A DNA stretch of 64,000 nucleotides, taken from sequence record NC_019411.1, one strand, 5' to 3'. The notes beneath the pieces are model-generated. The model made no database searches. It worked only from the letters and a program-made list of their open reading frames with translations, and had not been told where the DNA came from. A program made the position numbers and the translations under genes. Shown piece after piece: positions 4,984 to 56,004 of this stretch; within the stretch, counting starts at the first letter, position 1; the number at the start of each line of letters is the position of its first letter.

Positions 4984-7107
4984 TCAGACGTCCAGAGCGA
5001 AGACCGGCGGGGAGACGTCCGGCTTCTGAATGATGAATCCCCGATCCAAGAGGGGCGGGAAGACCTGCTTGAGCACGCCGGCCGCGACCCCGGCTTCCTC
5101 GGCGATTTCGGCGAACGTGAAGGCCTCGCGCTGACCGGCGCTGGCGACAAACAGATCGTTGAGCGCCAGGATCACCGCGCCCGCCGGACTGATCTCGTAG
5201 GCCATGTCGAAATTCGGGTCTTCCGATAGCCGCAGCAGGCCTTCCGCCTCCAGGTTCGCGATGAGCGCCTTGAGTTGGTCGACCTTGACCGCGCCAAGAT
5301 GGGTTTGGATTTCCCAGGGCGTCGCCGGCTCCTCGGCGCGCACGGCTTGCAGCGTCGCGATCAAGGCGATCGCCGGCATGGCCCGCACGATCATCTCGTC
5401 GCCAACCGTCAGGTCCGGGGCGTTGACCAGCAGGTCATTGATCACCGCGTCGCCGTGGGTCTCGACATAGGTCCGCAGCCGCTTGAGGGCGACCAGGAAA
5501 TCGTCCTTGGTGATCGGCTCGATGCGGAAGGTCAGGAGCGGGTCGGTCGGAATCTCCGAGAAGTAGGCCCGACCCCGGTGGCTCCAGCCCTCGACCACAT
5601 GCAGGAAGAGATCGATCGGCATGGCGACGGCGCCAAAGCCCAGTCGCGCATCGTCCGTCGCCTCCTCGACCTGCGCCAAGGCGTTGTCGATCGCTTCGAG
5701 CGTGAAGCCCCCGACAAGGCCGTTTTCCGCCGCGTCCAGCACGTTGGCCGCTTCTTCGGTGCCGAGCCCTTCGACGACCATTTCCGAGGCCTCCTGAGCC
5801 GTTTCCTGCGGCAGGGCGTCGGCGAGCTTGCTCATCGCCTCGGCGACGCCGCTCGTATCGAGTTCCAGCTTCAGGGCCAGCTTCTCGGGACGCGCCGAGT
5901 AGGGCACGCCCTGGATCACCACGGCGCCCAGGTCGCCGACGACGCGCTTGGTCACTTCCAGATAGGCGTAGCGCGAGGCGGCGTTGAGCAACGACAGCCG
6001 TTCGAAGACGATCTGCTGCTCCTGCTCGCGCGACAGGATGCCCGTCTCCAGGATGAACAGCGGCTCGGAGCCATCCAGCGGGGGCTTGGCCTCGCCGTCG
6101 TCTTCCGGAAGGTCCTCGTCGAAATCGGCGCCGCTGATCGGCTCGCTCTCCGGCGGGGTGAAGCGGATGCCCGGCTCGCGGGGCGGTTCGGCGGGAGTGG
6201 CGTCGTCGAGAGGCATGTCGGTCCTTTGAGGCTTGGAGGTGATGAAGAGCGTGGTGAGATCGACGTCCCAGACCCCGCGCCCGTCGGTGAAGAGCGCCAT
6301 GAAGGTCCCCAGGCGCGCATCCCAGCGGATGGTCTGGATCACGCCGTTGACGTCGCCATAGACGCCGGTCGCCCCCACGAGTTCATCGCGCAGGACCTCC
6401 GCATGGTCGTGGCACTCGCCGAGCGTCGCCGGGCGCACGGCGTGGAACGGGTATTGCTGGTAGGCGCCCGGCGGCGAGACGAGGCGGACATTGACGTAGA
6501 GCGGCCCCAGATAGGTGTGGGCGTCGCGCAGGAAGCCGACCACGGTCTCCCCGTCGTTCTGGGTCGCCACCACGGGCATGCCGGCGCAGTTAGCCGTCAG
6601 GACCGCCGGATAGTCCTGGGGATAGGCCACGGCGTACAGGTGGAGATGATCACCCCGGCGCTGGGCCTTCCAGTCGGCGACACACCAAGCCGCCACCCGC
6701 GTGGCCCCGAACTCCGGCGTCTCCTCGATCAAGACGCCGCCGTCCGGAAGGTCCGCCTGCCCGACGTAAGGAACGACCTCGCTATGGCTGACGCTCCAGG
6801 CGGGCTTGGGAAATTGCGGGGTGATCATGAGCTTCTCGGTGAAGGTGAGATTGATGGCGTCGGCGTAGTGAACATACGGGCCGACCGGGGTAGTCCAGGG
6901 CGGATCACCCTTGCGGATGTCCGACAGCGGCACCGCGACGTGCCTGCCGTTGGGCTGGACGATGTCGGCCAGGATGCGCGGCGGCTGGTGCATCAGGGTC
7001 ACGACGTGCCCCTCGCCCGCCTCGAAGGTGCGGCTCTTGGGCCACCAGACCTTGGACCCGGTCCAGTGGATCGACTGGATGACGAGGTCTTGTTCGGTCC
7101 CGATCAT
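4984..7107 (-). CDS. large hypothetical protein with C-terminal winged-helix-like segments
   Basis: 707 aa; LIANLEAEGLLRL...YEISPAG and FAEIAEEAGV...LLDRGFI. Confidence 0.75.
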   Translation of the reverse strand: MIGTEQDLVIQSIHWTGSKVWWPKSRTFEAGEGHVVTLMHQPPRILADIVQPNGRHVAVPLSDIRKGDPPWTTPVGPYVHYADAINLTFTEKLMITPQFPKPAWSVSHSEVVPYVGQADLPDGGVLIEETPEFGATRVAAWCVADWKAQRRGDHLHLYAVAYPQDYPAVLTANCAGMPVVATQNDGETVVGFLRDAHTYLGPLYVNVRLVSPPGAYQQYPFHAVRPATLGECHDHAEVLRDELVGATGVYGDVNGVIQTIRWDARLGTFMALFTDGRGVWDVDLTTLFITSKPQRTDMPLDDATPAEPPREPGIRFTPPESEPISGADFDEDLPEDDGEAKPPLDGSEPLFILETGILSREQEQQIVFERLSLLNAASRYAYLEVTKRVVGDLGAVVIQGVPYSARPEKLALKLELDTSGVAEAMSKLADALPQETAQEASEMVVEGLGTEEAANVLDAAENGLVGGFTLEAIDNALAQVEEATDDARLGFGAVAMPIDLFLHVVEGWSHRGRAYFSEIPTDPLLTFRIEPITKDDFLVALKRLRTYVETHGDAVINDLLVNAPDLTVGDEMIVRAMPAIALIATLQAVRAEEPATPWEIQTHLGAVKVDQLKALIANLEAEGLLRLSEDPNFDMAYEISPAGAVILALNDLFVASAGQREAFTFAEIAEEAGVAAGVLKQVFPPLLDRGFIIQKPDVSPPVFALDV

Positions 7108-13383: not shown

Positions 13384-13881
13384 ATGACCCGCAGCACCGC
13401 CGACATCATCGCCCGCATCAAGGTCCTGGAGGAGGACCCCACCGACTTCTTCGGCTTCCAGGCCAATGATCTGGTCTGCTACCTGCCGTTCGAGGCCGCC
13501 AAGCCTTGGCTGAATGAAAACGCAACGCCCGAGGTCTGGACGCCCAACGTCAACACTCCCGAGGCGATCAAGCAGGTCATCCTCGACTACATGGAGTTCG
13601 CCTGGGATAAGGCCAACAACCGGCGCGGCCTGTCGGCCGGGCGCTCGCTCGACCACATGAAGGCGTGGCTCTGGATGCTGGACGAGGACGCGGCCTGGGT
13701 CGCGGCCCTGAAGCTCTCCGACTACACCCACTACGGCAAGCCGCAGCTTCGCGCGATCTGCAAGCGTTTCGGCTGGGACTGGACCGCCTGGGACGACGGC
13801 GCCTGGGGCAACAGCGAACACCGCGAAATCGACGTCAGGCCCGAGGACGTCCCCGAGGTCGGGATCGTCGAGCCGGCCTGA
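13384..13881 (+). CDS. hypothetical protein
   Basis: start MTRSTA; phage-like codon bias. Confidence 0.7.
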   Translation: MTRSTADIIARIKVLEEDPTDFFGFQANDLVCYLPFEAAKPWLNENATPEVWTPNVNTPEAIKQVILDYMEFAWDKANNRRGLSAGRSLDHMKAWLWMLDEDAAWVAALKLSDYTHYGKPQLRAICKRFGWDWTAWDDGAWGNSEHREIDVRPEDVPEVGIVEPA

Positions 13882-13902: not shown

Positions 13903-13961
13903 TTGACAAGGTTCTGGGAACTCCTCTATACCCACGCTCGACGACAACGAGAGGAGTTCCC
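13903..13961 (+). promoter_or_regulatory. cassette promoter
   Basis: TTGACA-N18-TATACC...GACGACAAC GAGAGGAG. Confidence 0.75.
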
Positions 13962-15722
13962 ATGGCCGAGACCATGTCCCTGAGTTTCCGGATCGAAGGC
14001 GCCGCCCTGGTGGAACGGGCGCGCGATCGCGTCATCGAAGGTAACTGGGAGCACGGCCTGCGCATCCTGGTCGAGGGCCTGCACGGCATGTCCTACGAAC
14101 TCGCGATCGACATCCTGCTCGGCAAGCACACCCTGGGCGGCTGGTCCTCGGACCCCGAGGGCGTCTATCTCACCGACCAGGACCCGGAGGACGAGACTTT
14201 CAAGCGCTACAAGGAAACCCTCGACTACCAGTTCGCCGGCGTCTTCAAGCTGGACGACGGCCGGATCATGCGCCCCTACGCGGTGGTCGACAGCTTCTCC
14301 AAGATCGACTTCGACTCTAGGGTCCGCTTCCTGCGGCTGGCCCAGGGCTCGGACCCGGTGTTCTCGCGCCCCAAGCGCTATCACGACCCCCGCGCCGAGA
14401 TCAACGGCGAGGAGATCGACTGGGCCTATCGCGCCCTGCACTACGCCGACGAGCCGACCCAGGACATCGTCCGTCTGGTCCGCATGGAGGGCTTCCACCC
14501 CACGATCCGCGCGGCGGTCCTGTTCAAGGAAGTCCGCGACTACCCCAAGCTCCTGCTCCCGAAGGTCGAGACCGACGCCCAGAAGGCCGTCGACGTGGCG
14601 ATCAAGGCCCAGCGCGGCCTCTCCAAGCGCGGGCACGTCTACGAGTATGGCGCTGGTCAGGACTTCGACAAGGAGCACTACAAGACCACCATGGGGATCG
14701 ATCAGGTCCCCACCGCGTGGTCCGTGCGCAATCCGAAGTACGTCGATCCCGACGCCAAGTTCGTGAAGGACACCCTGGCCGAGATCGACGGCGACAAGCG
14801 CCCGGCGCCGGCCGGTGATTACGCCGGCGCCATGAACCGGATGATCAAGGATGAGATGGACGGCGGCATGGACATCAGCGCGGCCGTCGCCATGACCCAG
14901 GCCAAGATGGCGCTGCTGGGCGGCATGGCCGAGGACCCCGAGCAGCGCCTGCGGGCGATCAACGACGCCTACGCCGCCAAGTACGAGAAGGCCGAGGGCC
15001 GCAGCGTCGAGGAGTACCGCAAGGCCATCATCGCCCAGGCCGGCGATGATTTCTTCGATCTCGCGTACACGGATGTGAACGGCAAGGACGTCGTCCTGAA
15101 GGTCCCGACCGCGCCGTTCGAGCAATGGGCGCTCTGGCGCACGGCCGGCTCCCACCTCGCCAAGCCCTGGAAGCGGGTGACCTACACCGGCTTCAAGACG
15201 TTCGGCGATGATCCCTATCACACCGACTGGGTGCTGGGCGCTGGGCTCAATCCCGAAGATTGGCCGATCATCGAGGCCGACAACCCGCCGCTCCATAAGG
15301 CCGCCTGGGACAAGCGCTTCCGGCTGGCCGAGGAGAAGCTGGGCGGCAACATGCGCGTCCTGCTCGGCAAGGGCTTCGTGACCGGCAAGATCGTGATGCT
15401 CAAGCCGGGCGAGGCCCTGTCACCGGGCGAGATCGGTGTGATCCGCAACGCCGGCCCCGACTACGTTCAGGCCGCCCAGAGCGCGATCGAGCACAACACC
15501 GCCTTGATCTGCGAGAACGGCGGCAGCGTCGCCCACCTCGTGGTCGAGTACCTGGACAAGCCCCTGCGCCTGACCCGGATCGAGAACGCGCGCAAGATTT
15601 TCAAGGACGGCATGACCGTCTACCTCGACTTTGACAAGTCGACGCGAGAGATCGCCAAGGGCGGCCTGGGGCCGAGCCCTGCCGATCTTGGCCTCGACAC
15701 GGAATGGGAGATTTTCGAATGA
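13962..15722 (+). CDS. 586-aa protein with C-terminal PEP-utilising mobile (phosphohistidine swivel)-like domain
   Basis: GEIGVIRNAGPDY...ALICENGGSVAHLVVE. Confidence 0.7.
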   Translation: MAETMSLSFRIEGAALVERARDRVIEGNWEHGLRILVEGLHGMSYELAIDILLGKHTLGGWSSDPEGVYLTDQDPEDETFKRYKETLDYQFAGVFKLDDGRIMRPYAVVDSFSKIDFDSRVRFLRLAQGSDPVFSRPKRYHDPRAEINGEEIDWAYRALHYADEPTQDIVRLVRMEGFHPTIRAAVLFKEVRDYPKLLLPKVETDAQKAVDVAIKAQRGLSKRGHVYEYGAGQDFDKEHYKTTMGIDQVPTAWSVRNPKYVDPDAKFVKDTLAEIDGDKRPAPAGDYAGAMNRMIKDEMDGGMDISAAVAMTQAKMALLGGMAEDPEQRLRAINDAYAAKYEKAEGRSVEEYRKAIIAQAGDDFFDLAYTDVNGKDVVLKVPTAPFEQWALWRTAGSHLAKPWKRVTYTGFKTFGDDPYHTDWVLGAGLNPEDWPIIEADNPPLHKAAWDKRFRLAEEKLGGNMRVLLGKGFVTGKIVMLKPGEALSPGEIGVIRNAGPDYVQAAQSAIEHNTALICENGGSVAHLVVEYLDKPLRLTRIENARKIFKDGMTVYLDFDKSTREIAKGGLGPSPADLGLDTEWEIFE

Positions 15723-16015
15723 GCGAGAAGTGGCAACCGGTGGAGGAAGCCGCCAATAACCTCTCCGGCTGGAACGTGCGCTCGGCCCAGATGGCGGTCG
15801 CCGGCGGGACCCTCTATCGGACGATCGTCTCGCGCGACAGCCAGGGCGCCGCGCCGGCGGTGAGCACCACCTTCATCCCGGACGCCCCGCCGCAGTTCAC
15901 CGTCCAGGTCACCGACGAGGACCTCCGGAGCCTTGCCGAGTGCAAGGACGTCGCCAGGGCGCGCAGCCTGTTCCGGGGCATCCTGAAGGCCCACGGCCTG
16001 GAGATCATCGCCTAG
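15719..16015 (+). CDS. hypothetical protein
   Basis: ATGA coupling; resembles 8327-8506. Confidence 0.65.
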   Translation: MSEKWQPVEEAANNLSGWNVRSAQMAVAGGTLYRTIVSRDSQGAAPAVSTTFIPDAPPQFTVQVTDEDLRSLAECKDVARARSLFRGILKAHGLEIIA

Positions 16016-16240
16016 ATGCCGGTCTACGAACTCTCCGTCACCGCGATCCACCGCGACACCGTCACGATCGAGGCTGATAGCGAGGAGGCGGCCCGCGCCC
16101 GCATCCTCGAAGAAGGCTATGCCAATGGGGACGACATAAAGTCGGTTCACCACGATGTCGATCCGGAGATCGAGATCGGCGACGCGCGCGACGTGACGGA
16201 CGAGCAGTGGATCATCAGCACCTCGGACGAGGAGGACTAA
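16016..16240 (+). CDS. small acidic hypothetical protein
   Basis: packed ORF; TIEADSEEAA. Confidence 0.65.
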   Translation: MPVYELSVTAIHRDTVTIEADSEEAARARILEEGYANGDDIKSVHHDVDPEIEIGDARDVTDEQWIISTSDEED

Positions 16241-16747
16241 ATGGCCGACTTCAGCCGCGCCCGCCGCTCCATGGAGACCGCCGACCTGATCGAACGCCTC
16301 AAGGCCCTCTACGACCTGGAGGACGCCCGCGATATCCCAGACGAGGAGACCAAGGCCGCCTTGAAGGAGGCGGTGGTCCAACTCGGCTATCTTCACGAGC
16401 AGGTCGAGTTTGGAGAGAGCCTCCAAAAGTCCTATCAGAACCTGATCAACTACTACAAGACCGACGCCCTGGCCTCGTCCCAGGAGCCGGACTTCAAGCG
16501 CGCCGCCCGTGAGCTTCATCTGATCGAGTCCTACCCGCCCAGACTGCGGCTGGCGGTCGGTGGTTTCCGTAAGGCCATGGACGAGCAGGGCTTCTTGAGT
16601 GGTGAGAATGGCCGCGCGATCAGCCGACTGATCAGCAAGCATCTCGATCATGATCTGGCGGGCGTGCTGGGCTCGGAGATTAACTACTATACCCGCAAAG
16701 CCATCGGGGCGCTGCGGGGTCTGGCCCCCGAGGAACCCAAAGCATGA
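16241..16747 (+). CDS. hypothetical protein
   Basis: GAGGAGG RBS. Confidence 0.7.
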   Translation: MADFSRARRSMETADLIERLKALYDLEDARDIPDEETKAALKEAVVQLGYLHEQVEFGESLQKSYQNLINYYKTDALASSQEPDFKRAARELHLIESYPPRLRLAVGGFRKAMDEQGFLSGENGRAISRLISKHLDHDLAGVLGSEINYYTRKAIGALRGLAPEEPKA

Positions 16748-54880: not shown

Positions 54881-55034
54881 AGGGACCCTTCGAAATTAAC
54901 CTTTCGGGGACCCTGGGAAATCGACAGACGGGGACCCTGGCCATTTTCCGGCTGGGGACCCTGCCAAATTCATCGCCGGGGACCCTCCGAAATTCATCTC
55001 TGGGGACCCTGGCGAATTCAGAGCCGGGGACCCT
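54881..55034. repeat. 24-bp-period GGGGACCCT array
   Basis: cores at 54906, 54930, 54954, 54978, 55002, 55026 plus AGGGACCCT at 54881. Confidence 0.9.
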
Positions 55035-55054
55035 GGCGAATCATGGAGCCGACG

Positions 55055-55756: not shown

Positions 55757-55858
55757 GCCCGGCCAAAGCATCATATATGAGCCCTTAACCCCTCTAAGGT
55801 CTCATATATGCGACCTTACGGCCCTCTTGACGCCCTCGTGTTCCTCTGAACGCGGGGG

Positions 55859-55960
55859 CGTTTTGACGTCGGCGCATTTCCAACTCAACGCGCGGCCGTT
55901 TTGACGTCCGAGCGTTTTGACGCGAGCGCATTTTCGATTCGACGGGCGAGCGTTTTGACG
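55859..55960. repeat. CGTTTTGACG x4 (54-bp tandem duplication)
   Basis: copies at 55859, 55897, 55913, 55951. Confidence 0.85.
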
Positions 55961-56004
55961 TCCGAACGTTTTTCAACTTGACGTCGTTTCATTTACCACG
56001 AGCG

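Follow-up and report, generated by a model that had tools for sequence, protein, structure and literature searches.

The gene gp245 of Caulobacter phage CcrSwift, whose product is annotated as a "hypothetical protein" (CcrSwift_gp245), raises the question of what a phage would do with a swivel histidine domain and between which sites such a domain would carry a phosphoryl group. Enzymes with a swivel histidine act in central metabolism (PEP synthase [PEPS], PPDK, and Enzyme I), in antibiotic resistance (rifampin phosphotransferase [RPH]), and in aromatic catabolism (HpeHI). To our knowledge, in every characterized enzyme with a swivel domain the histidine is the covalent carrier of a phosphoryl or pyrophosphoryl group between two distant sites. 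We analyzed the last 64 kb of the genome of CcrSwift, a phiCbK-like Shapirovirus (JX100809, positions 155217 to 219216); this stretch is called the window, and nucleotide positions refer to it unless a contig is named.

gp245 is a protein-coding gene under strong purifying selection

The gp245 coding sequence occupies positions 13962 to 15722 of the forward strand, from the ATG at 13962 to the stop codon ending at 15722, and is translated into 586 aa (P0001). A longer open frame at the locus begins at 13665. The sequence AGAGGAG, which resembles a Shine-Dalgarno element and was read at 13950 to 13956 (+), lies 5 nt 5' of the ATG at 13962; this spacing, the annotated start, and the fact that all homologues begin there identify this ATG as the real start. 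The codon for His525 is CAC at 15534 to 15536 (+), read in the context ICENGGSVAHLVVE, and in alignments this residue falls on the His that accepts the phosphoryl group in PEPS and RPH. The open reading frame, its coordinates, and the position of the histidine given by the initial annotation were thus correct.

The counterpart of gp245 in phiCbK is gp239 (CbK_gp239). Codon differences from phiCbK were synonymous in 20 cases and nonsynonymous in 1, and those from the close relative Karma were synonymous in 18 and nonsynonymous in 2. These ratios demonstrate that gp245 is a protein under strong purifying selection. At the DNA level, the gene is 97 to 100% identical across 16 phiCbK-group records. 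The downstream gene gp246 (98 aa, hypothetical; 15719 to 16015, +) starts within the stop of gp245, with a 4-nt overlap (ATGA) that suggests translational coupling. Homologues of gp245 do not have gp246 as a family-wide neighbor.

The C terminus of gp245 is a phosphohistidine swivel domain

Residues 463 to 567 (15348 to 15662, +) form a phosphohistidine swivel domain of beta/beta/alpha fold, as the initial annotation had proposed, and profile searches, hhalign, and fold comparison agree on this. The single gp245 sequence was a poor query. It gave no match to PF00391 at an E value of ≤1, its only Pfam match being DUF7097 (E value, 0.08), and no match in the PDB. The failure to match PF00391 is attributable to divergence in the phiCbK clade, in which the usual "...AHLVTVaRE" has become "AHLVVEYLD." In this clade the sequence after the His motif (VVEYLDKP) lacks the usual Arg-Glu, and Ala precedes the His instead of Thr, Ser, or Cys. 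A relationship to PF00391 had been set beforehand as a check on the domain assignment; gp245 itself gave no match at an E value of ≤1, and 13 of the 18 homologues found by word search matched PF00391 at an E value of ≤0.01, the best at 8.8e-12. The protein of Vibrio phage 1.232.O scored 22.1 bits (cutoff, 23.1). At the level of sequence, then, membership in PF00391 holds for the family profile and not for the single gp245 sequence.

When a profile of 18 family sequences was compared with the PDB, it matched the swivel domains of PEP synthase (8a8e; E value, 3.9e-10) and of the Listeria rifampin phosphotransferase (5fbs and 5hv1; E value, 4e-10), as well as Geobacillus pyruvate kinase (2e28; E value, 4.6e-9) and 2ols (E value, 2.6e-8). 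No Enzyme I chain was matched by the profile at an E value of ≤10. In these alignments the gp245 motif GGSVAH525L (family "GGalAHL") was placed against "GGrtsH" and "GGLMTH." We also compared the swivel block of 161 family representatives, which differ from one another by >50%, with a PEPS swivel alignment built in this analysis; hhalign returned a probability of 98.7% (E value, 1.9e-16). Searches of NCBIfam gave only subthreshold matches, located in the swivel region, with RIF_Ptrans_rph at 13 to 20 bits against a cutoff of 999.

Structure prediction led to the same assignment. An AlphaFold model of gp245 built on the 18-sequence alignment had a mean pLDDT of 72, with values of 77 to 91 in the swivel domain, and the modeled residues 463 to 567 superposed on several swivel domains and showed their three-layer beta/beta/alpha fold. 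The top Foldseek match was RPH (E value, 7.6e-5). The geometry between the domains was predicted without confidence (pTM, 0.39). Conservation of His525 among homologues, on which the domain call had been made to depend, was complete in two sets of aligned relatives (18/18 and 19/19) and extended to 158 of the 161 representatives, the exceptions being two sequences gapped at this column and one with Asn. Residues 463 to 567 of gp245 are therefore genuinely homologous to the phospho-carrier domain found in PEP synthase, RPH, and PPDK and, judged by sequence, are closest to the PEPS/RPH/pyruvate kinase type. The domain call as such is not new, since UniProt automatically labels relatives of gp245 "PEP-utilising enzyme mobile domain-containing protein."

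Two conserved front modules have no detectable relative in the PDB

The 460 residues in front of the swivel domain comprise two conserved modules and a variable region between them. Module A (residues ~8 to 225; 13983 to 14636, +) is a conserved alpha/beta module with a fold without known match and a pLDDT of 80 to 92 over most of its length; F9, G13, R21, G42, G54, G60, P105, D116, R157, Y161, and P195 are near-invariant among the 161 representatives. It is followed by a linker and helical insert (residues 226 to 348; 14637 to 15005, +) with a pLDDT of 30 to 60, which varies in length across the family and is mostly gaps in the shorter homologues. Module B (residues 349 to 460; 15006 to 15341, +) lies directly before the swivel domain and is again conserved (pLDDT, 75 to 96). 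It contains the invariant motif G410-x-K412-x3-D416-D417-P418-x-H420-x-D422 (15189 to 15227, +), a candidate second active site, from which the loop runs on to x3-G426; P382, F386, W389, and W403 are also conserved in this module. The motif was identical in 19/19 loci, and among the 161 representatives K412 was kept in 98%, D416 in 99%, H420 in 99%, and D422 in 100%. The conserved residues of both modules are thus kept as strongly as His525.

Residues 1 to 460 folded alone gave a pLDDT of 72.6. The profile of these residues retrieved nothing from the PDB (best E value, 2.3), and Foldseek searches with the model returned no match better than an E value of 0.54. Comparison of gp245 with Pfam gave no match to PPDK_N or to PF02896 (PEP/pyruvate TIM barrel). 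Across Pfam, PDB profile, fold, and hhalign comparisons, no donor module could be recognized in gp245, whether ATP-grasp, P-loop, or PEP barrel, and the earlier statement that the protein has neither an ATP-grasp domain nor a PEP barrel holds. Modules A and B are neither of these two domains, and neither module has a detectable PDB relative by sequence or by fold.

Three candidate relationships were examined. For module A, ATP-grasp received a probability of 1.1% in hhalign against a 16-sequence PEPS ATP-grasp (PPDK_N type) alignment, and no fold match was found. Module B, at ~110 aa, is too small for a PEP barrel, and a barrel relic was considered in its place. Over 50 columns the module resembled the catalytic-Cys beta-alpha-beta unit that ends the PEPS barrel (probability, 33.5%; E value, 4.4e-4), with a reversed-query control at 1.1%. 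The same segment was the top match in an independent comparison with the EI/PtsP/PPDK type, where it was not significant (0.9%); this weak likeness was thus not reproduced against the EI type, and we draw no conclusion from it. The segment covers positions 15105 to 15260 (residues 382 to 433), where SG-x-KM-x-x-DDPYHTDW-x-LGAGL stands against CGE/Q-x-x-x-DP...L-x-x-G. Finally, an RPH-like front part found no support, since there was no fold match, RPH structures being absent from the fold-search matches of the front part, and since the family HMM aligned with an RPH-like open reading frame over the swivel alone with all filters off. A feature search of the ESM Atlas pointed twice to clusters with PF27448, "Rph_4th." Comparison with PHROGs returned phrog_11532, of which gp245 is a member and to which no function is assigned, and PADLOC models of known antiphage defense proteins gave no match for three family members.

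The gp245 family is large and essentially phage restricted

gp245 was recognizable in 28/28 matching Caulobacter phage records. Phages with relatives further included Brevundimonas phage Bajun (37%) and Caulobacter phage Seuss (36%), and ten records of Vibrio phages matched too, a number of them labeled "PEP-utilizing enzyme." The family is therefore not specific to Caulobacter phages but extends to those of Vibrio and Brevundimonas and to uncultured mega-phages. With the swivel domain left out, a profile of residues 1 to 460 matched 1,282 cluster representatives (50% identity) at an E value of ≤1e-3, 502 of them at ≤1e-30, among 1.84 billion. The best 150 of these 1,282 matches all showed the A-B-swivel architecture; nearly all were 430 to 630 aa long, the front part being followed by ~100 more residues. 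The A-B-swivel architecture is thus the rule.

IMG/VR contained 17 family loci, including contigs of 330 to 580 kb. A scan of 185,579 prokaryotic species (one genome each) found the family in at least one, on a 15-kb MAG contig; the scan used one exact peptide pattern, so that this count is a lower bound. The gp245 family is essentially phage restricted. Full-text literature searches retrieved no study of the family. What is new is a very large, phage-restricted family in which the carrier His is kept and both partner modules are folds without known match. A natural short form of ~240 aa, consisting of module B and the swivel domain only, is encoded at positions 5899 to 6615 of contig L023 (IMGVR_UViG_3300014208_000056). 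Within 6 kb of it no module A is encoded, and its upstream neighbors are a DUF5131 protein and a ParB_N-like protein.

gp245 as a candidate swivel-type phosphotransferase

Because characterized swivel enzymes shuttle phosphate, and because RPH and HpeH offer precedents, we read gp245 as a phosphotransferase of the swivel type whose donor and acceptor modules are new, a reading to which we give about even odds (a probability of roughly 0.5). In RPH (PMC4844700), as in HpeH of the two-component dikinase HpeHI (PMC12167813), the C-terminal swivel His shuttles between two sites that do not involve PEP, and RPH shows that a PEP barrel is required at neither site. HpeH further demonstrates that a substrate domain and a C-terminal swivel His can form a separate polypeptide (PMC12167813).

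On the phosphotransferase reading, gp245 would be a three-module enzyme of the swivel-histidine kind. By analogy with PEP synthase, RPH, and PPDK, His525 is presumably phosphorylated; it would be loaded with a phosphoryl or pyrophosphoryl group at a first site, swing, and hand the group over at a second, and the two sites would sit in the conserved new modules A and B. Module B adjoins the swivel domain, contains K412, D416, H420, and D422 as an invariant cluster, and persists in the natural short form; for these reasons it would be the likelier docking and acceptor site, acting through the loop that bears these residues. This would leave module A to bind the donor or to provide targeting, and the substrate may be a small molecule or a protein of the host or of the phage. 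The initial annotation had offered two roles for the protein, that of intercepting or feeding host phosphoryl relays and that of a novel phosphotransferase. The second fits the invariant His on a genuine swivel fold and the two conserved modules with invariant polar residues, whereas the first is left without support.

Comparison with known systems brings out what the phosphotransferase reading shares with them and where it departs from them. RPH (5hv1 and 5fbs) is closest to gp245 by both sequence and structure, and the C-terminal swivel is common to the two proteins. However, RPH has an ATP-grasp domain and a RIF-binding domain before the swivel, whereas gp245 lacks the ATP-grasp domain, its front 460 residues differ from the RIF-binding domain in fold and in sequence, and it has 586 aa against 867. 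HpeH and the phenylphosphate synthase type resemble gp245 in that a substrate-binding part and a C-terminal swivel His are joined in one polypeptide without ATP-grasp (PMC12167813). In the HpeHI type, though, the ATP-grasp subunit is encoded by a neighboring gene and the substrate domain is RIF-BD-like, whereas gp245 has no conserved neighbor and no RIF-BD-like fold. PEP synthase and PPDK (PF01326, PF00391, and PF02896) have a swivel homologous to that of gp245, as the hhalign score above indicates, but module A is not an ATP-grasp domain (1%), the PEP/pyruvate TIM barrel is missing, and the domain order is different. Compared with Enzyme I and EI-Ntr of the PTS, gp245 has neither the HPr-binding helical subdomain nor the PEP barrel, and no profile match was obtained at an E value of ≤10. 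The "phage PPDK" of vB_VneS_J26, a protein of 691 aa, has been described with PPDK-type nucleotide-binding, swivel, and PEP-barrel domains (PMC12038007), an architecture that is absent from gp245.

A bolder version of this reading is possible, although we hold it tentatively and with the odds against it. It supposes that gp245 is the founding member of a class of histidine-swivel phosphotransferases, self-contained and specific to phages, in which module A would be a phosphodonor-binding fold not seen before and module B, with its K/D/D/H/D loop, would be a new acceptor site, a host molecule being phosphorylated to take over or protect the cell. If this were true, the target might be a metabolite, a signaling nucleotide, or a protein that Caulobacter shares with Vibrio and further hosts. 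With >1,000 diverged clusters, found nearly only in phages and including mega-phages, the family would add a new branch of swivel-histidine enzymes, one that keeps the carrier His while donor and acceptor modules are both replaced by folds without known match. Such a branch points to a phosphorylation reaction needed by many virulent phages. The system is tractable, since genetic work is feasible in phiCbK and Caulobacter and since a single gene that stands on its own is involved.

Candidate donor genes and alternative roles

The absence of a donor-type domain from gp245 could also mean that the protein is half of a two-component system. In that case it would itself lack a donor site, and His525 would be charged in trans by the ATP-grasp domain of a host PEP synthase or PPDK, by Enzyme I-Ntr, or by a phage protein; the phosphate would then pass to a substrate of gp245, or a host relay would be drained or fed. 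Split dikinases with a separate ATP-grasp subunit do exist, HpeHI being one (PMC12167813). Only two mega-phage contigs, related to each other, have a gene for an R2K-type ATP-grasp protein (L003, positions 1016 to 1846; L013, positions 765 to 1580), located 4 to 6 kb upstream of the swivel gene. This gene is not adjacent to the swivel gene and not conserved elsewhere, and it is a possible trans donor in the lineage of these two contigs. Set against charging in trans, no neighboring gene is conserved across 18 family loci, and HMMs of the PEPS ATP-grasp domain and of the PEPS barrel found nothing of the PPDK_N or PEP-barrel type within 6 to 8 kb in any of them. The ten largest flanking genes encode a UvrD helicase, DUF1552, DUF5131, or ParB_N proteins or have no assignment, and none is an ATP-grasp gene. 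The complete genome of Karma contains no PPDK_N, PEP-utilizers_C, R2K_3, or ATP-grasp_4 domain and is thus free of such donor-type genes throughout. Moreover, module A equals the rest of the protein in conservation and needs a role, and the hosts are so diverse that any one host partner would need to occur in all of them. Charging in trans is the chief alternative, and on these observations it is rather unlikely.

Interception of the PTS-Ntr relay, and with it of ppGpp control, is a special case of charging in trans and finds no support. Nothing resembling an HPr- or EIIA-binding surface was seen in gp245. In addition, a role specific to Caulobacter is disfavored by the diversity of the hosts and by the family profile having reached PEPS, RPH, and pyruvate kinase chains but no Enzyme I chain.

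A different view of the domain itself is that the swivel of gp245 is no phospho-carrier but is structural or regulatory, comparable to the additional C-terminal domain seen in pyruvate kinases of the Bacillus type, and that all activity resides in modules A and B. The family profile did match such a domain (2e28), but the rest of gp245 is unrelated to pyruvate kinase. His525 and the preceding GG are kept in 98 to 99% of the 161 representatives despite their divergence of >50%, a level of conservation not easily accounted for unless the His is catalytic; with the His kept in 98%, a noncatalytic swivel is improbable. Least probable of all is a phosphate sink or phosphatase, in which His525 would accept phosphate from a host donor (e.g., PEP or a phosphoprotein) and module B would hydrolyze it, so that a host metabolite or signal is depleted, since the Asp/His/Lys-rich invariant loop of module B and the weak likeness (33%) that this module bears to the catalytic-Cys segment of PEP barrels, both of which would suit such an activity, are met by the insignificance of that likeness against the independent EI/PPDK-type alignment (0.9%) and by a lack of direct evidence.

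A recurring promoter-like cassette precedes gp245

The initial annotation had given gp245 a cassette promoter of its own. The 60 bases 5' of the gp245 ATG are indeed one copy of a recurring cassette with the layout TTGACA, 17 to 18 nt, TA(G/T)A(A/C), then C(T/C)CGACGACAACGAGGAGG, then ATG. In the gp245 copy (13903 to 13948, +), TTGACA is followed after 18 nt by TATAC and then by CTCGACGACAAC. The core pattern TTGACA-N-CGACGACAAC occurs 8 times in the window, this copy included, against 0 expected from 100 shuffles, and the copies fall into repeat families D5, D7, and D13. The claim is thus borne out as a sequence pattern, and promoter activity may be presumed from it; gp245, which lies among the small right-arm genes without known role, probably has a sigma-70-like cassette promoter of its own from which it is transcribed. 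In four RNA-seq runs from one 2023 study, contigs of a phage ~97% identical to the window span the gp245 region, although contigs cannot show transcription. In the phage of these runs (X1 to X4), 58 nt at positions 16182 to 16241 are replaced by 191 other letters. The replacement spans the gp247/gp248 junction (gp247 ends at 16240 and gp248 starts at 16241) and represents a small replacement polymorphism among phiCbK-group phages.

The eight cassettes lie at 536 to 581 on the reverse strand and at 13903, 17547, 26427, 31237, 33837, 36308, and 37701 on the forward strand, and each (TTGACA ... TA[GT]A[AC] ... CGACGACAACGAGGAGG-ATG) stands before a separate gene or gene block. They look like a family of early promoters for the host RNA polymerase with a common leader and ribosome-binding site. 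Other repeats were observed toward the right end of the window. Positions 54881 to 55041 contain five repeats at a 24-nt spacing with the core GGGGACCCTG, and three repeats containing GCGTTTTGACG follow 800 nt past this array, at 55858 to 55965. Both arrays are iteron-like and might serve as an origin of replication or as a binding site for a regulator. Another repeat family, TTTAC(T/C)TTTTGTTAAG-N-CTAGTGTC, is present in at least 8 copies between 56641 and 63645, in the final 7 kb of the genome, and probably represents a different class of promoter.
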